Shown here: piece by piece, positions 6,001 to 21,262 of the stretch | How the letters are laid out: the number at the start of each line of letters is the position of its first letter | Numbering within the stretch: position 1 is the stretch's first letter | NCBI GenBank assembly: GCA_905178155.1 | Contig: CAJINV010000011.1 | Coordinates: 1,822,454 to 1,886,453 of the forward strand | Origin: Amoebophrya sp. A120 | Lineage: Eukaryota > Protista > Dinoflagellata | DNA: 64,000 nt | Reading direction: 5' to 3' | Notes under the pieces: generated by a model | What the model saw: only the letters and a program-made list of their open reading frames with translations | What the model was told of the DNA's origin: nothing | Database searches by the model: none | Program-made: the position numbers and the translations under genes

Positions 6001-9000
6001 TGATGGCGCCGAGCACGACGAGATGTTGAAGATTGATGATGTTCACGTACCGACTTCAACTTGTATAAATGCAAAAACAGATTTGAAATGAAAACACAGA
6101 AAAGCAAAGCGCAGCAGACAACTGTTATTACCTTTTATCCAGCAACTTCAGCAGCTCTCCCGCGATGCTGTTGTGCTTTTTCGCGAAGAGATTTCTGGCC
6201 TCCGAGAGCGAGATTTCGTACAAGCCTGCCGTGATGCTTTCTGGCAGGGATTCCATAATGGCGTGTTCCTTCTCCTGCTCCTCGTGTATGTGTTTTGCGA
6301 TGTCCTGCACGGACGCGGGGTTTTCCTCGTCCTGCTTGCTCGCCACAATTTCTGCCACGTCCTGCTGAAGCGGCTCGAGGTACGGAGTGATCAGCTTCCT
6401 GTAATCCTCCAAACGGGCGGCACCGTACCTGGTTTTATTTTGCAGGGTCAGGGATTTTTTTCGAAAAAACTAACAAGGATATGAGTTGTACTACATCATA
6501 CATAATGTGCTGAGCGGCTGTACTAGTCGACATTTCATTCCCCTTCACATTTTTTTTCTAAATCGAGATCAACATGATCGGAAGCAATCCTAAGCTGCAA
6601 TACGGTTGCATCATTTTCTCTAATCTTTTCTTGACCGCGACCACCTTCTCGTCCGACGGGTGCGTGGTCTCGATGTTTTTCGGCGGGTCCGTTTTTCGCA
6701 CGAATTGCGACATCACCAGGGGTTCTGGCTGCGAGATGTCGGCCATCGTGACGAGCGCGGAGTCGATGACCTCCGTGACCATGGTCAAAAAATCCGCCCC
6801 GTTGGCGCTGTACGCCGCCTGGAACGTGTTTTGCTCCTTGTTTTCGTTTATCAAATGCAAAAGTGTCTGGGTCTGGAAGCTTCTGAGACTTGTCATGCAC
6901 GTTTTGCATACGCCATGATGTCTGTGATGCATGCCGTAGCATCACAGATTGTTCGCGGGGTTCTTGATGCCTCTTTCGCATGACAAATCCAAATGCCCTA
7001 TCCGCGTAGCAAAAATTAGAATTACATTCCCTTTGCTACTCATGCAATACAAATTCTTTTGGAATCCAAAGGCAGCATCACAAGTTGCATTCTTCCAGAC
7101 CGAGACACTTTTGCATTTGATATCGTTCACCTTCAGCTCCATCAGGAAAATCCCCGCCACGTCGTCCCTGGAAAGCTATGCAAGGAAAAAACTGTGTAAG
7201 TGTAACTTTGTGTTGCAGAAAATGCAAAACCGTTGCACTCGTCATCCTGGACATGCATCAGAGGTAATTTCCGTGCGTGTTCTCACGTACTAGCTGCGCA
7301 TGACAGGTTTTCTGTGTCATGCAGAGCAAACCTGTGATGCTATTCCCCCAAGAAACTTACACTTACACAGTCTTTTTCCTGGATAAAAGCCCGTTCAGGA
7401 TCATTTCCGGCGTCGGTGTGCGGAAAGCGACTTCCACCTCCTTCAGACTCTTGATCGTGCACTTCGTCGGCGTGTAGTTCACGATCTTCTGCTCGTACGC
7501 CTGAATGCTGGCGCGAACCACCTCGAATATGCTGGTCTCCATGATGAAGCGAATCATGGTGAGCAGCTTCTTGATCTTGCCGTATTTGTACGTCTCAGCG
7601 TTGGTTTCCTTAATGGAATACCTGAAATTGGGAACAAAAACAAATTGCGATCATTTTGCTTGGGACTTCATACATGCACTTGACCTCTTTTAGGCACGAA
7701 ACCGATGTTGAAATCTGCATACTTACACAACGGAAAGCGAAACAAGTAGGTCGCGAGCAAACTCCTATAATACCATCCCTTCTGCACGTCTTCAAAATTG
7801 GTGACCACCACCTTTTTCAAGTCCAGCACCCACTCCTTACACCTGCTCAGCATCGCGTTTATGCTTTGCGTCTGCAGCGTTCGGAACTGGTCGATCCGCG
7901 CGTTGCGCGGGAACTTGGTCTGGAAAATCTTCGTGCCGTAGGATTTCTCCAGCGCGAGACAGGCTTCGCGGATCTGCACCAACGTCGTTACCACTTGTGG
8001 CTTGACGTAGAGCGAGGAGAAGCAGAACTGCGCAAATAGGTTCGTGAAATTGTATGCCGGCACGGGGTGAAGCGCGTAGAACTTCGCGGGCTTCCTAAAT
8101 GCGTTCACCGACGCGTAGCTCGAGTCCACGTCGGGCGCGCCCGTTATGGCCTGCTCCTCCATTTCGGCGAGGGGGGACAACCCCTTCGCCTCGCCGGTGA
8201 CTAGTAGACACAGCCGGTTCAACACGCGACCGTAGTCGAGTTTTACCTCGTTGACCAAACTTTCCACGAAGTGATCCATGCCGTTGCTGCACAGCTCGGC
8301 GCTGGACCGCGCGTTCTTCTTCAGTCTAGCGACTTGGTCCACGTTCAGTGTGGAGATGCCGTCCGTCGGCACGTTGTCCACGTAGAAAAGAAACTTGATG
8401 TGCGAGGCCACGAGCTGTCGCTGGCGGAAGGCGTTGGCGACGCGGTCGGCGTAGGCCACCGGGTCCTCGCCGTCGAAGAAAAAATCTAAGCGGGACAGGA
8501 AGCACGGCGTCTCGTCGTCGTACCACAGTCCGTAGAAGTAATTCGTGTCGTCCCCTTCGTACTGGTAGATCACGCACGCCTCAAACGACCCGTCCGCCTC
8601 GCCGCCGACGCGCAGACCCTTGGCCTTCAGCCCGGTGCGCTTCTTGCTGCCCTTCGGCGGCTTGGGAATCAGCGTCATCCACTCGCGCGGCTTGCGGACG
8701 TCGTACTCCGTGTCGTTATGCACTGCAAAAGCATCGCACTCGTATTGCAATTTATGCACTATCTTTTTCTTACGGTAAATCAGCATTACAAATTCTACTT
8801 GTTGTTGTTTTCTCATACTGAGGAAATTTGTCATTGTCATGCATTTGTACGAGTACGATACTTTTGCAGTGCATAGTCGTCGAAATCCAGCAGGTCAAAA
8901 TCGTTGGAATCCAACTGGGACTCCTTAATGCCCTTGGGGTATGCAGAGAAAAAAATTTTTACTCGGAATTAATATACACGTTCTGTGCCACCTGTTGCTA

Positions 9001-10038: not shown

Positions 10039-11766
10039 CGGTTTCAGGATGTGATGTGCAAGCGGAAGAAGTGCCGGCTGGCTCCTGCTTTCTTCACCTC
10101 TCCGTGGTGCGTCGGTGGCCCTCGTAGTTTCGCAGGTCCTGCTTTATGCTGGCGGAGAGACCCGAGGAAGGAAGATCACGGGCTCCTCCATACGGAGGAC
10201 GACGTCGGTGTTGAGCATCTTTAATTTTTGTCTATCTTCATCACATGCCCTTGTGGCCGATCGGCTGACCCTGCTGACCTCCAGCTACAAAATGGATGAT
10301 GGAAAATTTGCCATACTGCATAAGACATGCAGTGACTTACTTTTAGAACAAGAAGTGGCGCAGCTGGGTGTTACACAGCAGGCTCGTGAAGACGACGCGA
10401 AACAAGAGCCAGCTGTGAGACTTTAATGCAAAGATCCCGGCGTCATCTTTAGCTTTGCCTGCAGTCGGGGCATGCTAGTTGATGCTGCGCTCTATCAATA
10501 CGATTCTCCAAGCGAACAAAAAACGCCCCTTCGACTTTTTGTCTTACGTCGCGCTCTTCTCGTGCTCCTCTCATCTCATCTTTGCTCATTCTCATTCTCA
10601 TTCTCGCTTCTCGAAGTTGTGGTCGAAATATGTAATGTTGCTCCAGGGTCTACCGCGGTGGCAAGGTCACTCGAAAACACTATAAGTAGATGGCCTTTCA
10701 ACGCATTAAGACCACTCTGCAACAGAGGACATGTCTCGAGGTCTAGAGCTCTTCTTCTGCAGGGTGCTCAACGCCTCATACCTAGCGCAATCGCTTCAAC
10801 TTACAGAACCTCCCAACGACGAGCGCAGGCGGTCAAGGCAAGGTGGCGGCGCCATTTGCGGCGGCGGTGCCCAACCTGTATCGATCGAAAGAACGACTCC
10901 GCTGGGCCGCCGGCCCACAGTCTCTCTGTGTCCCCGACCAGAGGGCCGGCGCCTTGGCCGCTCCCCTCCCAAAAACGACAGCGGGCACACCCGCCGGTAG
11001 GGGGAGGCTGGCAATTTATTTGCGCGGCGCGCCGCGCCCCGCCCAACAATAGACTTCACCGCAGACAGTCTGGACGAGGGAGGGCAGAATGAAATACGGG
11101 CGCCCCAACGGGCGCACGCGGCAGCAACTGCGCGGGCCGGGGGTGGCACACGAGGCCGGGCGGGCCGACCGGTATCGTACTGGCGCAATGAATCCGCGCG
11201 GCAGAGGCCGCCGGGGGGGCGGCATAGGGGGGCAAGGCAGGGAGGGCCCGGACGGGGCGGCCTCGCCTGCTGCCTGCCTACTTCCTTGGCCTTGGGCGGG
11301 CGCCATCACTTCCTGCTTCGTATTTATTGCTTTGACTTCGCAGCCAGCAATGGCCGCCGAGGCCGCGTCGCACAGTCCGAAGACAAATCCCGAGATGCCC
11401 GCGCCCCGCGTGATTCTGACCGCGCCGGCATCAGAGACCTCGCACGCCGGTGCGCGAATAGGGCGCCGTCGCAGGTACGCCCTTTCATCCAGCATACCTT
11501 AGCTGCACAAAGGCAAAGTCGTGGCGCTGCCACTACTTTATTTGGTGCCGCGAAACAACAACAGCGGCGCCCTCCTACTCGGAGGTAGCCCGCCGAACGA
11601 CCCTGCTTCCAACGCGTGCGCCGCTTCGTTCACACATCAACACGCCCGGAAAGGGTAGCGCATGGCGCTCTGTGGCACGCCTAGGGTCGTGGAAGCATGA
11701 TGGGGAAGCGAATGCTTTCGACACCGCTCGCGAGCCCGACTGCAAGAAGCCATTTTTGACTTGATC

Positions 11767-12260
11767 AACGAACGAAGATATTTCTACACCTTTTCTCACA
11801 CTCAGTTTTCATTTTCCCCATTACCACCTCTCACGTATCTATTCTCGCCTGGTGTCAGTACTTCGAACATAGATTGAAAAACCGAAAAGAATGAAGATCT
11901 TGGATCTCCTCCTCGTGGTTTTTATTTACCACTGCTGCTTTTTTACCCTGTGGCTGCCTTGTTCGGACAGTGAAATGTTGCATCAGGAGCTTTCGTTTTT
12001 GTACGCAAGACGAAAGAGACGGAAAAACCAGATTTGTAATGCGGAACGCCAAAAGTTGACAAACAGAGATTATTTTTCCACATGAACATAAAAAAGAGCT
12101 TGACTTTTGTGCCCGTTTAGTCGTGTTTCACCAATCTGTCATGGTAAATAAAAGGCGAAATAGAGTGTGGCTTGCTGCTGTGGCGCGTGTGGGCAGCAAT
12201 GCAGATTAAAAATCTGTGATGCTGAAAGAGGAAAAGTTTGTTCTTTTTCCGAGGCCTGAT
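11767..12260. repeat. 3' terminal direct repeat (pseudo-LTR) of the retroelement
   Basis: 494 bp, AACGAACGAAGATA...GAGGCCTGAT. I found only 3 substitutions versus 18390-18883. Confidence 0.95.
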
Positions 12261-12442
12261 TAGAAACGCCATAAATAAGATTCCTTGCTCTTCGAAAAGT
12301 AAAACGACAACCATAAAAGACTTACTATACCACTATTGCCTTGCGTTAACTAAATATCCTGATGGGGTTCAACATGCCGTCGCGTAAGTGCATTACAAAG
12401 GCTTCTATGTAGCATTTTCGGAGTAGCGACGGAGCGAGGAGT

Positions 12443-15400
12443 TTATACCGGTGACGCAGTCTCTGCGTCGCTGCTGTTCTCTTGGTCCTCTGCGTTGATA
12501 CGAAGCGACGCTTCGTAACACAGACGCCCGTACTCAATCCCCCTCCTCATTTTACTCGACAAAAATGACTGTTTTGGAATTTCCGCTTTCGAAGGAAGTG
12601 CCTCCGTAGAAATTCCTTTGTCCGAAATCCAGTATCTAATCCCAATTACGTGTCCCTCCGCGGTTGTATCCGATAGCTTACACCCCCGATAAAACTCCTC
12701 CTTCAATTTCCCCGGCTCGATACCACGCAACAACAAGCGGATGAGGGTGAGGTCGTCGATGTAGCGTTTATGGCACAGGACGCCCCTCCTCCCGTAGCGG
12801 CTGCGTGGGTCTCCGTATGTTGCGGCTATCGTTCCACCCCTCTCCGCATTTATCCCAAACGCGTTGCTCACCTCGACCATCAATGGTGACCCCATCGGCC
12901 CGCCCCCAACCTGTCGCGCGATCAGGCCCATGCAGCGGCAGATAGCAAAAGTAGCGTCAAGCTTGAGACACCGCAAGACGAGATCAATATCGATGTGCCA
13001 GAAGTGTTTGTTGTCCGGCTTGTCCTTCAAGAACTGGATATTCCTCCGCGGTTTGGGTCGTGCGCGTGCTATCAGTGACGTCATTTTGATCTTCCTGTGG
13101 TACAACTTGCCAGCGCGCTGCTTGGGGTTTTCCTGCCTGTGCTCCTCGACCCTTTGGAGGTAGGGCGTGTTCTTTTCTACCGCGACAAACTGCGTCCCGT
13201 ACCCCTTAAGCTGTTGCACTCTTTCGCCGACAATCTGCATCGCGTCAGCAACTGAGCACCTAGTGAAGAAGTCTTTGACGTCAGCAGTCTGTATTGCTAT
13301 TTGCAGTCTTTGTCGCTCCTCTGGTGGGAGGTCACGCCAGAACTTGTTTATCTGCTCAAACTCCGCGATGAGCTCTTGCTGCGTGCTGAAGAGGAAGTTT
13401 TTGTAGTCGACGTCGAGGATCCGCCGGATGACCCTCGCGACTGTGGAGAAATGCCCGCCGTAGATGTGCTTGAAGTAGCTCGTTATCGGTCGGAATGCTA
13501 TTGCCCCGCCCTTCAAGTCTGTGACCTTTAAACTCCTCCCCCTAGTCACCTCGTCAAACAGTCGCTTCTTCAGCATGATCTTCAAGAACGGCCAGCGGTG
13601 GAACTTGCGGAAGCGGATGTTTGTGAGGTCCTTGGTTTTATTCTCCTTTGCAATCGAAAAGAAGCCTCCCTGCACGTCTGTGTCGTACTGCGCTAGACCT
13701 CCCCAGCCTGGAATCAACTCGTAGTCACCCTGAAGGTGGTTGATCATGCAGTGGCTGATTATTCGGTCACAACAGAAGAAGACGCTCCGCGACTTGTCAA
13801 CCTCCCCTGTGTAGCAGTGCGCCGCCAGAAGCTTAGCAACGTCCGTCACGTCGTCCTCCGTGCAGTAGGACTTACGCCTTTCCCAGTCGATCGACTTCGT
13901 TGCTATCTCCTTATCCTCTTTCTCTCCTCCTAGTGGTATGAGGCCTGGCTGTTTGGAGAATTGTTTTCTGGCTCTTCCTACTGCTGTGGCGACTTGTCCT
14001 CGGGTCGGCGCGAATGTAGCAATCCTGGTCCAGTTTACTTCTTTTCCCTGGTGTGTTGCAAGTGTGAAGCCCGACGAAACAGGCTCACAGCAAATATGTC
14101 CGTCGATCGTAGGCAACCACGGATGCCGCTCCTTCAGTTCCTGGCAAGAACAGCGAAGCGGCAGGTCGTTCCTGATCCTGTACGCAGTGTTCCGGTGCCA
14201 ATCCGCCAGCTTCGTGCCGAACATGTCCAAAAACTTCTTTCCCCTGGATTTCTTAATCCGCAGGACACGCACCGGGCCGCACCTCAGCTCTTGGTGTGTA
14301 AGCATGCGCGAAAACATGCGGCGCAGGTTGTTGAGCAGCATCGGCGTGGTCTCTGGGAGGCGGATTGTTGTGACGATGATCTTGGAGCCGCTAACAGTGG
14401 CGTCAAGGTTGGAGCGGAAAATGTAGTACTTGCCAGTAGGGAGGAGGCGTTTTGCGTGGCTGTGCAGCTGTGTAACTTCTCGCGCCGTCTTCGCCCGTAG
14501 GTAGGAGCTGATACTGTTAGACAGTCCAATCCTCTTAGACATGGACAGGATGACCCGCGCTTCTTCATCTACAAAATCCGGCAAGTCCCACTGCGCCATG
14601 GCTTCGAAAGCACGCGCGGGCTCCTTGTCGGATATCTCGAATTGTCGGCAAGGGTGTCCAGAGGTGCGTGTACTCTTGAAAACTTTCCGCCGCGGGTGTG
14701 TGATGATGAACGTCTTCACCACCCCCGCCCTGCTCTTCTCGTGTTCGCGGACAGCAGCCCCCTGGGTGTTGCTTGTCGCATGGAAATACTGGATCAAGAT
14801 GCGCTCCCCCACTGCTAAGTTTGCCTCCTTCTTCACCGGCGCGTGCATGAGTTTCACTACTATCCAGTTCGGCTCGCCGTCTCGGTGGAACAAGCCGACG
14901 AGCTTGTTCTTCCTCCCCTCTTCCGCTGCCGCCATCCAATGTGACTCCACCCGGTCTAGTTTCGCCTTGGTTGTCCTCCCCACGTAAGTTTTCCTCGTTC
15001 CCGGCCGCCATGCAAGATACAACACGTGCGTCTCCCTTTCATCCTCTGCGTTCGTGCTCGCTATCATGCGGCAAATTCGAATTTTTTCCCGTAGCCTGTT
15101 GGTGAAGCGAGTATTACTAAGTTCTAAAATCTGCATCATGAGCTGCTCATCCATTTGAAAAAGCTGTTTTCGGATCTCTTTCAAAAAAGAACGAAAGGGG
15201 GGCCGTTGTGCTGCTTGTTGTTGTCCTCGCCGCTGTGGATCTGCCCAGCTCGGAAATAGTTGATCCCTGCTCCTCGTGTGTCTGCAGTCCACCTTTCCCC
15301 ACCTATCCCTCCGGATTTCAACACAACATCCGCAGTCCTTCGTCTTTTTACAATAGCAGCACTTCTGGTAGTTTTCCATCCTCTTCAGTGTGTAGTTCCC

Positions 15401-15814
15401 AATTCCCGCCTTGATGTTCTGCACCTCGTAAAGCCGTGCAAGAGATGGAGATGTAGTTTGTAGCTGTTCGTTCAAAATTTCCAAAAAATTTAAGATGTCG
15501 CATTTTCCATACCGGAATCTGCACAGTACCCGTGAGTCGTCGTTCATCATTATAAAAGAAGTCGCCCGCTTGTTGTTCGTGAAGAAGTTTCCTGCACTTT
15601 GGCAGGTTGTAGAAGTCGAGATGATAGTGGTCGTTTTTGTATAGTTGTTTTTTACGCCAGTTGTAGCGTATACTGTCAGTCCGCAAGTTGCTCGTAGAAA
15701 ATAAAAAATAAACCCGTTCAAAATCTTTCCTGCATAGAAACTTCTGAATTGATAACCCCCCGCTGACGTGCCCTCAGTAAAGGTTGAACACCGACGAACT
15801 GCTTCCACCACCAC
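12443..15814 (-). CDS. GIY-YIG endonuclease / reverse transcriptase polyprotein (ORF2); first ATG at 15550
   Basis: GIY-YIG-like VLYLAW-x7-YVGRT...R...H...E...N; CSC...DGHIC motif; PLE-type pre-RT 'VDK'; FRPI; ADVKDFFT; GGPMGSPL; RYIDDL. Confidence 0.92.
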   Translation of the reverse strand: MVVEAVRRCSTFTEGTSAGGYQFRSFYAGKILNGFIFYFLRATCGLTVYATTGVKNNYTKTTTIISTSTTCQSAGNFFTNNKRATSFIMMNDDSRVLCRFRYGKCDILNFLEILNEQLQTTSPSLARLYEVQNIKAGIGNYTLKRMENYQKCCYCKKTKDCGCCVEIRRDRWGKVDCRHTRSRDQLFPSWADPQRRGQQQAAQRPPFRSFLKEIRKQLFQMDEQLMMQILELSNTRFTNRLREKIRICRMIASTNAEDERETHVLYLAWRPGTRKTYVGRTTKAKLDRVESHWMAAAEEGRKNKLVGLFHRDGEPNWIVVKLMHAPVKKEANLAVGERILIQYFHATSNTQGAAVREHEKSRAGVVKTFIITHPRRKVFKSTRTSGHPCRQFEISDKEPARAFEAMAQWDLPDFVDEEARVILSMSKRIGLSNSISSYLRAKTAREVTQLHSHAKRLLPTGKYYIFRSNLDATVSGSKIIVTTIRLPETTPMLLNNLRRMFSRMLTHQELRCGPVRVLRIKKSRGKKFLDMFGTKLADWHRNTAYRIRNDLPLRCSCQELKERHPWLPTIDGHICCEPVSSGFTLATHQGKEVNWTRIATFAPTRGQVATAVGRARKQFSKQPGLIPLGGEKEDKEIATKSIDWERRKSYCTEDDVTDVAKLLAAHCYTGEVDKSRSVFFCCDRIISHCMINHLQGDYELIPGWGGLAQYDTDVQGGFFSIAKENKTKDLTNIRFRKFHRWPFLKIMLKKRLFDEVTRGRSLKVTDLKGGAIAFRPITSYFKHIYGGHFSTVARVIRRILDVDYKNFLFSTQQELIAEFEQINKFWRDLPPEERQRLQIAIQTADVKDFFTRCSVADAMQIVGERVQQLKGYGTQFVAVEKNTPYLQRVEEHRQENPKQRAGKLYHRKIKMTSLIARARPKPRRNIQFLKDKPDNKHFWHIDIDLVLRCLKLDATFAICRCMGLIARQVGGGPMGSPLMVEVSNAFGINAERGGTIAATYGDPRSRYGRRGVLCHKRYIDDLTLIRLLLRGIEPGKLKEEFYRGCKLSDTTAEGHVIGIRYWISDKGISTEALPSKAEIPKQSFLSSKMRRGIEYGRLCYEASLRINAEDQENSSDAETASPV

Positions 15815-17459
15815 CTCGTCCCTGGTCCCGCACCAAATTCTTCTCGTGGCGCTGCTTGTCCACCTTCTCCTTCTGTTCGCGAATGAAGTTGATCAGCAGG
15901 ATCACCACCCAGGACGTCGCCATGGAAATACAAAAATCCTTGCCATCCTCATCGACAAACATCTGCTCCGGCACCAGCTTCCCGTTGTAGGACTCGATCA
16001 CGGAATGAAAATACTTCACGTTCGTCACCGGCATGCCCTCGCACTCGTGGAATTCCTTGATGATCATCTCAGTGGTTGCCTGCAAGTTCTCCAACGGCAG
16101 GATCTGTCCGATTATCCAGAAGCCTTGGCACAGGGCGACCCACTCCTCTTTCAGGGTTTCGACAGCGGTGCTGCGCAACTCCAGGACTCCGATGCTAATC
16201 TCCTCCTGTATCTGTTCCGCGTCCTCCTTAAAAATCGTCGCGAGGGTATCCACAGTCGCCGGCCACTGAAATAAGTTGTCAAGCGTGTTCTGCTCCTCCC
16301 GGAAAACCTTTGTGTAGTGTTGCAGACCGCGGAAGGAGATGGGGTTTTGCTTCCCAAACATCTCCGCATACTTCGCCTCGAACATGCTATTCACCTGTGC
16401 CGGCAATAACTCCTCCGCGAAGTTTTCAATTTCTTCAGCCGACTTCTGGCAGTACAACTGGAATTGACTGGGCGGCGTTTTCTCTCCAATGTTGTACCGC
16501 TCCGGGTGTTTGCTGAGTTTCTCCATGTTGTTCTGATTGTTATCACCCTCATCGTCGGACACGTAACCCCTGTTGCGTCGTAGCGGATTGTTGTACTTGT
16601 TATCGGCGAAAGTAGCGCGCCGCATCTTCTCGTGGGTGTCATCACCTCCTTTCCCATTAGAGTTGCGGTCTCTCTTCCCCGATGCTGATCCGAAGAAGCC
16701 GGCCGAGGTGCCGAAGTCCGTGGAAGGAAAGAAGGAGAACTGTTGCCCTTTTCCTGTGGTCTGTGCCTCCTGCAATTTAATTTGTTTCTCCAAGATCTCA
16801 TTTCTCAGCCGCATCTTCTCCAACTCGGTGTCTGTCGCCGCGTCACTGCTCCCTCCACCACTGCTCATCCGGGCGGACTTCTTCCAGTTGACCGGTCTTG
16901 CTGTTCCGCGCCAGTTCACCTGATTGAGCCACTCACTCTCCCCCGGATCACCGTGTTTGTTTTTGACCTCCTCGACCACCATCTGCAGCTGCTGCTTGAA
17001 GATCTCCATCGCCGCGTCGTCCCCACTTTTGTACAGCATGTCCATGAGCGAGGCGGCCTGTGCGATGTCGACGCAGTGCAGCCGGGGCACCGGGATCGGC
17101 ACGTACCTGTTGATCAGGCCTGGTTTTTCTAGTTTGTCCGCTTTTTCAATCTGTTGGTAGCAATCGCGCATGGCAGGAAGGACGCCGAACTTGTACATCG
17201 TCGCGACCGAGACCGAGCGAGCGTCGAAGTCGAAAAAGACCATGCCGTGGCGATACGAGTCGTAGTCACAAGCATCCTTATCATCTACCGGCTGCGCGAA
17301 ACCTCCCTTCGGTTGCTGTTGCTGTCCAAAACCACCAAGGCCGCCGCCAAATCCCTTCCCTCCGGTCAGCATAGCAAGCCCCAGACTTTGCATGGGGTTG
17401 GAAAACATGTTTGCACCGGTGGCCGGAGCCTGAGCAGACGCAACCTGGAAATCCGGCAT
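15774..17459 (-). CDS. Retroelement ORF1, 561 aa, unknown function
   Basis: Long intronless ATG-started ORF inside the terminal repeats. G/F-rich N-terminus and a predicted coiled coil (TELEKMRLRNEILEKQIKLQEAQ). Confidence 0.85.
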   Translation of the reverse strand: MPDFQVASAQAPATGANMFSNPMQSLGLAMLTGGKGFGGGLGGFGQQQQPKGGFAQPVDDKDACDYDSYRHGMVFFDFDARSVSVATMYKFGVLPAMRDCYQQIEKADKLEKPGLINRYVPIPVPRLHCVDIAQAASLMDMLYKSGDDAAMEIFKQQLQMVVEEVKNKHGDPGESEWLNQVNWRGTARPVNWKKSARMSSGGGSSDAATDTELEKMRLRNEILEKQIKLQEAQTTGKGQQFSFFPSTDFGTSAGFFGSASGKRDRNSNGKGGDDTHEKMRRATFADNKYNNPLRRNRGYVSDDEGDNNQNNMEKLSKHPERYNIGEKTPPSQFQLYCQKSAEEIENFAEELLPAQVNSMFEAKYAEMFGKQNPISFRGLQHYTKVFREEQNTLDNLFQWPATVDTLATIFKEDAEQIQEEISIGVLELRSTAVETLKEEWVALCQGFWIIGQILPLENLQATTEMIIKEFHECEGMPVTNVKYFHSVIESYNGKLVPEQMFVDEDGKDFCISMATSWVVILLINFIREQKEKVDKQRHEKNLVRDQGRGGGGSSSSVFNLY

Positions 17460-17466
17460 CTTGTCG

Positions 17467-18450
17467 CTGGTGGTAATGGGGAAAGACGGCTAGTCGCAGA
17501 AGGTGTAATTAAAATACGCAAGAGAATGCTTCTAAAAGAGAGTGCAGCCAGTTACAGACGAAGTAGGTAAAATTATGTTAGACAGCATGTGTGTAAGGCA
17601 CTAGGATATAACAAGAAGTAGAAGAACGGAGTAACAACAACACGCTCTAAGAAGACCACAAACAAAAAGGTAAGAAGCGAACAACTGCGGGCGACTTCAC
17701 GGAAACTCACCCCGAATACATCGGGCAACTTACTTTCAAACGGGACCTTTTTCAATCTTGATCGGCAACGCGCAGATCAAGAGAAAGAAATATCCTGCAG
17801 ATATAGCCGCGCGGAGCATTAAAAAATTACACATCTCTCTAGTTTTATTTTGCAAGTAATCATTTTTAGAGTGGGACCAGGCGAGTTGGAAAAGAAGCAG
17901 CAAAATTGGCAGAATTCCTGCTTTTTCCTTGCCTTGTAAAGCCTAAATGAACCGATATAGGTGGGGACAAGTCGTGTTATATGAGGTAGCAAAGATGCAG
18001 AAAAATGGAGCGCGTCGTCGGTGTTGAGAGAATAAAAATCACCTCGTCCCCCAACACCTCTTTACAGTCCTAAACCCGCCGACCTGAGTACACGCTTTTT
18101 TACCTAAACTGCCATACAAAAGCGTCAGAGTCACCGGATTAGCTCGGCGGAACAAGGACAGCAATACAACACAGGTATCAAAAGCAAAGCACCAGTGGAG
18201 CCACAGGGTATACTCAAGCAGGGTAAGAAACAGATTGGCTATCGTGTGTTTTTGTATCGTGCTCTCCGCCAACTTGGGATGCGTGTACTTGCAGCGTCTT
18301 TTACTTAGTCGTCCTGTGTCTGTTTTTTCTAATAAAAAGGTAAAAAAGTTTACAACATAACCCGGAAAGTCTCCTTATATGCCGTTTTTAACGAACGAAG
18401 ATACTTCTACACCTTTTCTCACACTCAGTTTTCATTTTCCCCATTACCAC
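17467..18450 (-). other. Predicted 984-nt GT-AG intron in the retroelement 5' leader, with complementary ends
   Basis: Minus strand reads AG|GTGGTAATGGGGAAA ... TTTCCCCATTACCACCAG|CGACAAG-ATG(ORF1). Confidence 0.6.
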
Positions 18451-18883
18451 CTCTCATGTATCTATTCTCGCCTGGTGTCAGTACTTCGAACATAGATTGA
18501 AAAACCGAAAAGAATGAAGATCTTGGATCTCCTCCTCGTGGTTTTTATTTACCACTGCTGCTTTTTTACCCTGTGGCTGCCTTGTTCGGACAGTGAAATG
18601 TTGCATCAGGAGCTTTCGTTTTTGTACGCAAGACGAAAGAGACGGAAAAACCAGATTTGTAATGCGGAACGCCAAAAGTTGACAAACAGAGACTATTTTT
18701 CCACATGAACATAAAAAAGAGCTTGACTTTTGTGCCCGTTTAGTCGTGTTTCACCAATCTGTCATGGTAAATAAAAGGCGAAATAGAGTGTGGCTTGCTG
18801 CTGTGGCGCGTGTGGGCAGCAATGCAGATTAAAAATCTGTGATGCTGAAAGAGGAAAAGTTTGTTCTTTTTCCGAGGCCTGAT
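18390..18883. repeat. 5' terminal direct repeat (pseudo-LTR) of the retroelement
   Basis: Second copy of 11767-12260. Confidence 0.95.
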
Positions 18884-21262
18884 CAAGTGTGGTCACCGCT
18901 GTTGGTCTACGAGTACGACTACGATCGAAACAATAAAGAACATAGACACACACATAGCTAGGTGTCGAAGGCGTCTCCCACTGGGTGCATCACCCCCGCT
19001 CGCCTCTCGTCCTTTGTCAAAAGGTACGCAGAAACTCAAAGCCTCTTCAGCCCCGATAAACTCAAGCTCCATGGCCTATTGTTCACTCAAGAAGTTTCTT
19101 GTGGCAGCCATGTGACACAATACACAGAAACAACAACGAGGTCGCGCCGTGGCACAAACAGTCGCTGTACTGCTCGCGCCCCCCTACTCTTTGCTTTCAT
19201 GCTCTCGAGTTTACATTACAATAAAAGGCAACGTCATCGGTAGATCTAGCAAGAATTCCTCGTATCAATTCCACCTTCTGCTTCAGATCTTGCAGCCGGC
19301 CCTCTCATGGTACCTACATCTTTGCTCACATGCGAAAGTGAAACCAAACACACACAAGAACAAGGCCGCTCAGCGTCGCGTTCTGTCCCCGGCAGTCACC
19401 GCATTAAAAAACGGCTTGGTAGTATTCAATGACGCTTTGACATACGAACCGGGTGTGGCGGTTGTGGGCATCAACTTTGCGGTCTGCCAGACAAAGGGGC
19501 CGGCGCCGGCGCCTGGGCGCGGCGCGCCAAAATAAACATCGCGGACAGACACCTGGATAAATTGGCGCGCATGATGTTCCAAGAGAGATGCGACAAAGAC
19601 AGTGGCGCGCCCGCCACAGCGTGCTCCCTCGAGCTGGGCCAAAGGCAACACAAACACAGCGGACTCCAAGATATCCGCCCCGGCCGCGCTCCATGCGGGC
19701 GGGCATTCATGCCGGCACACAAACCGAGCGGCTGCGTCCAGGCGCTCAGGCTTCCCCTCGTCTCCGCCACGAGAGCGCCGCGCTTACAGGCCACCACGGG
19801 CAGCAGGCTGGAATCCGGACAGCTTCGTCATGCAGCAACTCCAGCGCAAACGCGCCCCGCCTCGAGTCCAGCGCTTTCGCCTTAAAAACTGCCGTCGCTG
19901 AGAAAGCAACGCCCCACCCCGTCGACACAAGTAGCAGGCCGGAATCCACCGGGGAGAACTTCACACCGTCGCAGACATCGGCGCGGCCCAGCGCGCGCCA
20001 GTTCGCATAGCGGCCGAAGCCTCATCCGCGACAGGCGCACCGCCCCGCCACGCGGACAAGTCCGCACGGTTCTGATTGGCAGCCGGCTGGACGTGGTTGC
20101 GCGGCGCACCATGTCGATCGTCGCCGTCATCGCCTTGCTGCTCAACATCTTCAGGAGCTAGTATCAACCCGCCCCCCGCGGGCACCGCGGGGGCCGGTAT
20201 CGAAAGAAAAGCACCATTGTGATCAAGGATATTCTGGCTATCACCACCTGAAGGCTGCATGTGTTGAAGCTTTGCTCGAGCATACATGGTGTTACCCAGT
20301 AAACAAAGGGTTGAAAAGAGGAAGGGTCTAATTCGGCAACAAGTACTTCCGCTCCTTCGACATTTTTCCTCTGGACCACTCCCCGACATACAAATATGAT
20401 AAACCACAATGTCAATGTCATGATATGTAATTCCGCACAATTCTGCTTTCTGCCTCAAATCTTGCAGCCGGCTCTCTCATGATACATTTTCGCTCGCATG
20501 CGAAACCAACAACACACGAGAAGTAAAAGACGGCTCAGTAAAAAGAAGCGTTCGAACATGACATCGCAATATGGTAGCCAGTCGTGCATCTTTTTCTCCC
20601 AATTCCTCTACGTCTGTGCTCTTCATAAGTAGGTGCGCGTCGGCACTGCGTCTTTTTCGGTCCAATAAACAAGAAATGCAACTGCCTGTGAGCATTGCCT
20701 CGTCGCGCAGAAGACATGATGACTCATGCTCGTCTTTTGCGTTTCTATCGCGCATCAAATAAGCGAAGCGCTGTTTTCGTGCAGGAGAAGGCGAAAAAAA
20801 AGCTATAAAGCTCTTTCTGTTCGCATATTATCTGCTGAAGTTGTAGTTGTTTCAATCTGAACATCGACCGCCGTTATTCCACCGCATTAAAAAACGGGTT
20901 GGTAGTATTCAGCGACGCTTTGAGCGACGAACCGGGTGTGGCGGTTGTGGGCATCAACTTTGCAGTCCCCCTTCCAGCCCCGCTTAACCCTCCCAAGCTG
21001 GCCGGCTGCCGTACAGGAGTTTGCAATTGCGAAGGAAGGGCTGGCGGCCGCAATTTTTGCTTCCCCGGCAGAGAGGTGCTGCTCCCAGACCGTGCGCCTG
21101 CTCCGCCCGGCAGTTCTGAAGCTAGCAGCTTCACTTGCTTTTGTAGTGACGAAACCTAGTGTGTGATTTTCGTTTGTAAAACAAGAGGACACAGGATGAA
21201 CTACAATTATTCAGAAACGTACTATCGCGATCATCGCTGCTCCTGCGAGCTTCATATGCTGA

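Follow-up and report, generated by a model that had tools for sequence, protein, structure and literature searches.

A probable full-length Penelope-like element with an N-terminal GIY-YIG endonuclease and a companion upstream reading frame in Amoebophrya sp. A120

Organization of the element

The window analysed here is a 64,000-nucleotide stretch of contig CAJINV010000011.1 of the dinoflagellate Amoebophrya sp. A120 (assembly GCA_905178155.1, positions 1,822,454 to 1,886,453). Its GC content is about 51%; the genome measures 115.5 Mb at 51.2% GC and contains introners with inverted repeats (Farhat et al. 2021, PMC7789003). Between positions 11767 and 18883, on the minus strand, two long open reading frames (ORFs) lie between direct repeats of 494 bp, and the second of them, ORF2, joins a GIY-YIG endonuclease (EN) near its N-terminus to a reverse transcriptase (RT) resembling that of telomerase. 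We consider it very probable that this is a full-length, apparently coding-competent Penelope-like element (PLE) of the type whose endonuclease is N-terminal (Naiad/Chlamys sensu lato). The type is already known, having been described in 2021 (Craig et al., PMC8557442), and the Amoebophrya element would be its first record in alveolates. PLEs were stated to be previously unknown across TSAR when three Chlamys families were reported from Ectocarpus in 2025 (PMC12477816). Our full-text search of the literature on PLEs with Amoebophrya, dinoflagellates or alveolates returned no report, and no alveolate record of an endonuclease-bearing PLE was found in the literature searched. In the orientation of the element, which is that of the minus strand, its features are as follows.

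18390-18883, minus: 5' pseudo-LTR (pLTR; LTR, long terminal repeat), an upstream partial tandem copy of the last 494 bp of the element
17460-18389, minus: leader of 930 nt, from the 5' pLTR to the ORF1 ATG
17467-18450, minus: candidate GT..AG leader intron, bounded by a perfect 16-nt inverted repeat
15774-17459, minus: ORF1, 561 aa
15551-15773, minus: ORF1-ORF2 spacer, 223 nt
12443-15550, minus: ORF2, 1035 aa plus stop, from the first ATG
15323-15361, minus: Cys cluster CCYC-x5-CGCC, ORF2 residues 64-76, from the translation
14759-15031, minus: GIY-YIG endonuclease domain, residues 174-264, by fold match to I-TevI
14096-14158, minus: CxC...DGH motif, C467-x-C469 ... D483-G-H485, a zf-CDGSH-like signature of Naiad/Chlamys PLEs (PMC8557442)
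13793-13798, minus: DK motif, D585 K586, followed by S (VDKS)
12506-13633, minus: RT core, residues ~640-1015
13259-13282, minus: RT motif A, DVKDFF
12881-12904, minus: RT motif B, GGPMGSP
12752-12763, minus: RT motif C, YIDD
12261-12442, minus: 3' untranslated stretch, 182 nt from the ORF2 stop to the 3' repeat
11767-12260, minus: 3' pLTR, the terminal 494 bp, ending ...CTTCGTTCGTT without poly(A)
11762-11766 and again 18880-18884, no strand: flanking TGATC, a 5-bp target-site duplication (TSD) or microhomology

The direct repeats (11767-12260 and 18390-18883) differ by 3 substitutions in alignment, that is, by 0.6%, and the body without the upstream pLTR is 6.6 kb long. The repeats are not a product of chance, because repeat and body recur elsewhere in the genome, in one further full-length copy and two truncated ones. 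ORF1 extends from 17459 to 15774; the frame of ORF2 is open from 15814 (1123 codons) to a stop at 12443-12445, and neither ORF contains an internal stop. An earlier note, made from the letters of the window, had described repeats with about three differences, a leader of about 0.9 kb, an ORF1 of 561 aa, an ORF2 of more than 1000 aa with its motifs in the order listed here, and no disabling stops, and all of this was recovered by alignment and measurement. The same note had seen no recognisable hammerhead ribozyme, in agreement with our Rfam search (E<=10, both strands of 11000-19600), which returned neither a hammerhead nor any other credible family. Its accompanying statement that Naiad and Chlamys elements usually carry hammerheads is the reverse of what Craig et al. 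report: most of them lack a canonical hammerhead (PMC8557442), and the missing ribozyme is therefore typical of the group rather than unusual. At the outer edges, the flanking TGATC extends to 7 bp (TGATCAA) when it is overlapped with the ends of the element. The 5' repeat copy terminates in TGAT, and with the next base, C, the two flanks share TGATC(AA) as a direct repeat.

Domains and predicted fold of ORF2

From its N-terminus, ORF2 presents a four-cysteine (Cys4) knuckle, the GIY-YIG domain, a KR-rich linker, the CxC/DGH and DK motifs and a TERT-like RT with a thumb. The AlphaFold2 (AF2) model of the protein (m364408ed6807), built from alignment A3, which comprises 42 sequences of the ORF2 family, has a mean pLDDT of 81.7 and a pTM of 0.68. 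When this model was compared with the PDB by Foldseek, the best 16 matches were all TERT, at about E 1e-6. A VIA fold search, independent of Foldseek, likewise ranked TERT first, over residues 433-1035 (Z 17.5, 16.8, 14.7 and 13.4), the best non-TERT RTs (DGR, DRT2, LINE-1 and R2) reaching at most Z 11.3, and it placed the catalytic domain of I-TevI (1ln0_A) on residues 174-264 (Z 8.4, root-mean-square deviation 2.3 Å, 85 of 92 residues). At the level of sequence, the A3 profile retrieved RTs among PDB sequences (DRT2 RT at E 2.5e-9, then retron and group II RTs, with TERT at 0.018), and the Pfam families GIY-YIG and RVT_1 each match three family members at the homologous position (for GIY-YIG, 3 of 42, best E 4.4e-6). 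The reading of the locus as a PLE with an N-terminal GIY-YIG domain, already proposed in the earlier note, is upheld by the TERT matches at the top of the fold search, by the I-TevI match and by a family profile that reaches both RTs and a PLE of canonical order.

The residues expected of the nuclease and of this type of PLE are conserved. In the endonuclease, Y, YVG, R200, H204, E249 and N261 are present, and the Tyr/Tyr/Arg/His/Glu/Asn set is kept across 28 relatives; residues 174-264 include no cysteine at all, and none is conserved in the relatives, so that a CCHH motif is absent. Upstream of the endonuclease, a family-wide cysteine pattern, CxxC-x5/6-CxC, is found in family B (described below) and in about 18 of the 21 relatives aligned there. 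The CxC...DGH motif is conserved in 30 aligned relatives and (V/I)DK in 34, with a variable third residue; CxC (zf-CDGSH-like) and DK are diagnostics of N-terminal-EN PLEs (PMC8557442). A distance of 126 aa separates RT motifs A and B, within the 105-126 aa of the N-terminal-EN relatives, as against 60-68 aa in three weak matches that look canonical in order. The model fills this interval with extra helices (residues 767-867), and the long insertion, sitting where the IFD has been described for Naiad/Chlamys and TERT, appears to be IFD-like. The TERT alignments of the VIA search begin at model residue 433-437, at chain residue 1 of Tribolium TERT; judging from the model, the CxC/DK region (residues 433-640, window 13631-14252) may be equivalent to the telomerase RNA-binding domain.

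A non-LTR retrotransposon of the long interspersed nuclear element (LINE) kind, with ORF1 and ORF2 and a GIY-YIG nuclease, would also account for two ORFs, for a coiled-coil-like helix in ORF1, and for the 5' truncation and variable TSDs described below. We hold it to be very improbable, as the LINE-1 and R2 RTs score Z 10.3-10.6 on the ORF2 model against 13.4-17.5 for TERTs, neither an APE nor an RLE nuclease was found, the element lacks a poly(A) or microsatellite tail, CxC and DK are signatures of PLEs, and the pLTR is a PLE trait.

Genomic copies and mode of insertion

Four insertions of the family are present in the genome: the copy in the window, a second full-length copy on contig C2, and truncated copies of 600 bp on C43 and 95 bp on C4. 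All of them are internal to large contigs, and none of the four sites is a (CA)n or (C)n microsatellite. The two full-length copies share 99.35% nucleotide identity (45 substitutions, no indels) within unrelated flanks. The 3' terminus (...CTTCGTTCGTT, in element orientation) is identical in all four copies, and the truncated ones are bordered by duplications of different length, a perfect TSD of 25 bp around the 95-bp copy and one of 10-11 bp around the 600-bp copy. One fixed 3' end combined with 5' truncation and variable TSDs is the signature of target-primed reverse transcription.

Near-identical direct repeats around two ORFs in a gag-pol-like layout could also suggest a true LTR retrotransposon or a DIRS-like element, in which the 494-bp repeats would be real LTRs. 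The copies make this extremely improbable. The 600-bp copy continues 106 bp past the supposed LTR boundary into the body, and the boundary is therefore not a functional terminus; the truncated copies either cross the repeat boundary or stop within it, and their TSDs of 10-11 and 25 bp are likewise at odds with real LTRs. No solo 494-bp LTR was found in the genome, the repeat ends lack TG...CA, Pfam and the fold search revealed no integrase, protease, RNase H or tyrosine recombinase, and the RT is closest to TERT. Since the insertions bear the marks of target-primed reverse transcription, the 494-bp repeat at the upstream end is a pLTR, as in other PLEs, and not a true LTR.

That there are only two full-length copies, both with intact ORFs, would also be compatible with a segmentally duplicated, immobile pair of host genes, for example a domesticated RT. 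The probability of this is, in our view, next to negligible, because the two copies lie in unrelated flanking sequence, two further sites hold truncated copies bordered by TSDs, and the differences between the copies are mostly non-synonymous. Returning to a mobile PLE, its age can be judged from the pLTRs, which are 0.6% apart, and from the full-length copies, which are 0.65% apart; on these sequence distances, fairly recent activity is plausible. With the intact ORFs, this makes the description "recently active" in the earlier note plausible, though unproven as regards current activity.

Three insertions can be resolved to their junctions: that of the window (11762-11766 / 18884-18889), that on C4 (L017, C4:7121797-7121941) and that on C43 (L021). 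The sequence following the inferred first nick is AAGTG in two of these three (TGATC^AAGTG in the window, GCCGC^AAGTG on C4) and differs in the third (CAGAT^AAAGA on C43); with n=3, a target preference for AAGTG may exist. The empty site reconstructed for the window, ACTTGATCAAGT, is a 12-bp palindrome.

ORF1, the spacer and the leader

ORF1 has a Gly/Gln-rich N-terminus, a conserved domain at about residues 36-242 that closes with a helix of about 27 residues (208-234), a basic and probably disordered middle, and a C-terminal half predicted to be helical; it has no zinc knuckle. No match to ORF1 was found in Pfam, PDB sequences, the ESM Atlas or a search of 5.8 billion proteins, and the genome holds no stand-alone homologue, ORF1 being found only beside ORF2. 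Its one detectable relative lies upstream of the ORF2 of a second family of the same genome, family B on contig C7, whose ORF2 is 35% identical to that of the window (family A). Family B consists of a repeat, an ORF1-like gene of 701 aa, a 189-nt spacer, an ORF2 of 1004 aa and a repeat. Residues 36-242 of ORF1 are 24% identical to the ORF1-like product (E 7e-8), and the position of helix 208-234 is conserved in it. The earlier note had asked whether ORF1 always travels with ORF2. It adjoins ORF2 in both full-length family-A copies and in family B, so that it is a conserved component, kept beside ORF2 in two families of this genome, and the idea of a one-off capture fails.

Throughout the 223-nt spacer the ORF2 frame remains open; the sequence itself looks non-coding. 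Relative to ORF1, ORF2 lies in frame +1 in family A and in the same frame in family B, and a fusion of ORF1 and ORF2 by frameshift or readthrough was rejected as a conserved mechanism on this ground. As the recoding geometry is not conserved and both ORF2s start with Met-Met, we infer that ORF2 is initiated separately.

The leader accumulates 9 of the 45 substitutions between the full-length copies. It contains a perfect 16-nt inverted repeat with arms at 18436-18451 and 17469-17484, which bounds a GT-AG interval of 984 nt, running from a point 61 nt within the 5' pLTR to 7 nt short of the ORF1 ATG. From its sequence, this interval is a candidate intron. Both arms are kept in the C2 copy. The possibility that the inverted repeat marks an inserted host introner was discarded, as the 16-mer occurs in the genome only in copies of this element. 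In layout, the candidate intron resembles the inverted-repeat introns of Amoebophrya, and an intron in the 5' untranslated region (UTR) that spans the boundary between pLTR and body, as this one does, is known from Chlamys-3_cRei and Penelope (PMC8557442).

Relatives of ORF2

Two paralogous families of the genome were aligned with ORF2, family B on C7 (L004, 35% identity) and a copy on C11 (L003, 48%). The resulting profile, run against 1.84 billion representative proteins, gave 84 matches, 33 of them below 1e-10. In nearly all long relatives among the 84, the order Cys, GIY, CxC, DK, RT is kept. One weak match, P0077, which is among the three with the shorter A-B distance, is a PLE of canonical order, with RVT_1 followed by a C-terminal GIY-YIG domain, both above Pfam thresholds. 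Neighbours of ORF2 in the ESM Atlas carry GIY-YIG, RVT_1, HTH_animal and DUF8422, and a search of metagenome contigs with alignment A2 yielded one contig, which at 2.7 kb is too short to be informative. The best external relatives of ORF2, and the only named ones, are proteins of Amoebophrya AT5.2 and A25. In an RT tree of 47 relatives (quick IQ-TREE, no named references), the window element, C11b and family B form a clade with support 99, and a separate A25/AT5.2 clade is well supported; the deep nodes are weak and the branches long. Two supported clades imply that Amoebophrya has at least two deep lineages of these elements. The C11 copy is 5'-truncated inside ORF2, with host genes upstream, and is uninformative on ORF1.

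It is conceivable that the Amoebophrya families and their relatives from marine metagenomes and transcriptomes, which share the Cys4 knuckle, the CCHH-less GIY-YIG domain, CxC, DK and the RT, make up a deep PLE clade apart from Naiad and Chlamys, with a dedicated ORF1 and a leader intron, reaching from the pLTR to ORF1 and bearing host-style terminal inverted repeats, as ancestral traits. We regard this as a tentative and rather unlikely proposal.

Other loci of the genome with similarity to PLEs or RTs were also noted. The C11 remnant (L019:6452-7156 and 7588-8640; G000 C11:3016451-3018639) is still open over 836 aa and borders on host genes, one for an EAP30/Vps22-like product and one for a protein with leucine-rich repeats. 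The PLE profile also matches weakly at C6:1373112-1374907, C1:2067445-2068116, C3:1644423-1644944, C1:10111708-10112247, C13:787380-788015 and C8:2151124-2151396 (all G000); these matches mostly cover the C-terminal part of the RT and probably represent other PLE lineages whose copies are truncated or decayed. An ORF of 918 aa on C22 (L037:532-3285; G000 C22:795872-798625, minus strand) weakly matches the RT palm part of the PLE profile (E 1.9e-5) and has no Pfam match; it may encode the TERT of the host or some other divergent RT. Finally, just beyond the 5' flank of the element there are direct repeats, one of 88 nt at 92% identity and one of 48 nt at 85%, spaced by 1.2-1.5 kb (window 19266-19484 and 20438-20967); they may be introner copies or the outcome of a local duplication.

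Evidence weighing against the assignment

Several observations count against a coding-competent PLE of the N-terminal-endonuclease type. ORF2 itself matches nothing in Pfam, at E<=1 or E<=10, and nothing among PDB sequences, either by phmmer or with the three-sequence profile, so the identity of its domains is drawn from the modelled fold and from the profile of its relatives. A word-indexed protein search with ORF2, ORF1 and alignment A3 was blank throughout, its word prefilter being probably limiting. Structure prediction, which the earlier note had suggested for both ORFs, delivered RT and GIY-YIG folds for ORF2; for ORF1 the AF2 model, made from 3 sequences, has a pLDDT of 29 and is unusable. 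The coding differences between the window and C2 copies comprise 27 non-synonymous and 5 synonymous changes. Such a predominance of non-synonymous changes corresponds to neutral decay after insertion, and neither copy is therefore proven functional. No reads of the element were obtained from three raw RNA-seq runs labelled as the same species, which is not a test of expression, and contigs from a fourth run cover only the C43 repeat with its flanks. In addition, the same 494-bp upstream repeat is seemingly present in both full-length copies, the 5' flank of the C2 copy reading N, and a shared repeat of this kind is not obviously expected from random template jumps.

Runs of N begin at or beside the pLTR of the C2 copy (L014, C2:1568677 onward) and lie at or beside both family-B repeats (L023:780-832 and 6813-6912, on C7). 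They are probably assembly gaps caused by the tandem structures of PLEs, masking the true repeat boundaries.

Proposed mechanism and significance

A cycle consistent with these features can be outlined for the element. The GIY-YIG domain would nick the target, and the 3'-OH released there would serve as primer for reverse transcription, which would begin at the 3' end of the RNA of the element (...CGUUCGUU). The 5' truncations would result from synthesis that stops early and the upstream pLTR from a template jump to another RNA copy, and a staggered second nick would give duplications of variable length. The pLTR probably holds the promoter and the donor site of the 984-nt GT-AG leader intron, whose removal would bring the 5' end of the transcript beside the ORF1 ATG. 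Translation of ORF2 probably begins at the conserved Met-Met that follows the spacer of about 200 nt. The ORF1 product, which is helical and combines a short helix of coiled-coil type with a basic, disordered middle, probably acts as an RNA-binding or chaperone partner in the manner of ORF1 in LINEs and in Athena/Coprina PLEs; this is the weakest step of the outline.

PLEs are the closest relatives of telomerase, and the mechanism of their transposition is still unsolved. An intact, low-copy element whose 3' end is clean, whose TSDs are clear and whose 1035-aa protein is modelled with confidence is a convenient case in which to study the cooperation of an N-terminal GIY-YIG nuclease with a TERT-like RT. 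The conserved ORF1 shows that an endonuclease-positive PLE can stably include a second protein, and the Cys4 knuckle combined with a nuclease lacking CCHH blurs the diagnostic that separates Naiad from Chlamys. As neither ORF has a Pfam match, elements of this kind are overlooked in Amoebophrya genomes or labelled "unclassified repeats". Should the proposal of a deep clade prove true, alveolates would gain their first PLE group and the PLEs a further superfamily.

Comparison with known elements

The element displays the clade-level features of N-terminal-EN PLEs: an RT of PLE/TERT type, an N-terminal GIY-YIG domain, CxC, DK and the A-B insertion, together with a pLTR, 5' truncation, variable TSDs and the lack of a canonical hammerhead. 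Within this group, going by the published descriptions of both, it appears to fit neither the Naiad nor the Chlamys definition cleanly.

The likeness to Chlamys, whose hosts are green algae, spike mosses, a slime mould and Ectocarpus (PMC8557442; PMC12477816), extends to the order EN, CxC, DK, RT, the long RT A-B insertion, an endonuclease without CCHH in which R, H, E and N are present, the variable residue after DK, the pLTRs, the 5' truncation and the missing canonical hammerhead; the body of 6.6 kb also falls within the Chlamys range of 3.3-8.2 kb. On the other hand, the Amoebophrya element has a conserved Cys4 knuckle upstream of the endonuclease, which Chlamys by definition lacks, a 561-aa ORF1, an alveolate host and a sequence too divergent for Pfam, and its insertions are not at (CA)n or (C)n microsatellites. 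The earlier note had suggested that the combination of an endonuclease, an ORF1 and no recognisable hammerhead may mark an undescribed lineage. For the upstream ORF a precedent exists in Chlamys-2_cBra of Chara braunii, an N-terminal-EN PLE with a separate upstream ORF (PMC8557442); that ORF is gag-like with zf-CCHC and the 3' hammerhead of that element is canonical, and the Amoebophrya element has neither.

These similarities raise the question of whether we are dealing with an ordinary member of the described Chlamys group that has kept or acquired an accessory upstream ORF, instead of a separate PLE lineage. The state of the endonuclease, the variable third residue after DK, CxC, the long A-B insertion, the pLTRs and the absence of a hammerhead are all Chlamys traits (PMC8557442), and Chlamys is structurally diverse, includes a two-ORF family and occurs in a TSAR member, Ectocarpus (PMC12477816). 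Against this stand the CxxC-x5/6-CxC pattern, conserved upstream of the endonuclease in the family and its relatives where Chlamys is defined without a Cys linker, an ORF1 without zf-CCHC, and an ORF2 too divergent for Pfam RVT_1 or GIY-YIG. We give membership of Chlamys slightly less than an even chance.

With Naiad the element shares the N-terminal GIY-YIG domain, a Cys-rich motif upstream of the endonuclease, CxC, the KR-rich linker, pLTRs and the absence of a hammerhead. It differs in that Naiads have CCHH inside the GIY-YIG core, where the Amoebophrya endonuclease has no cysteine, and in that Naiads have a single ORF, bodies of 3.4-4.4 kb, (TA)n targets and metazoan hosts (PMC8557442). 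The Naiad linker reads CX2-5CxxC, compared with CxxC-x5-CxC at the same position with other spacing here, and the Naiad DKA corresponds to DKS. Athena and Coprina elements are similar in having two ORFs, with an ORF1 of predicted coiled coil and disordered regions, and Coprina-1_Alen has direct repeats of about 420 bp (PMC13159263); they lack an endonuclease and reside at telomeres, in contrast to the GIY-YIG domain and internal insertions of the Amoebophrya element. TERT, lastly, is the best structural match to residues 433-1035 of ORF2, including the region before the RT fingers and the A-B insertion, whereas it has no nuclease, is single-copy and shows neither repeats nor TSDs, and its similarity in sequence is marginal (profile E 0.018).

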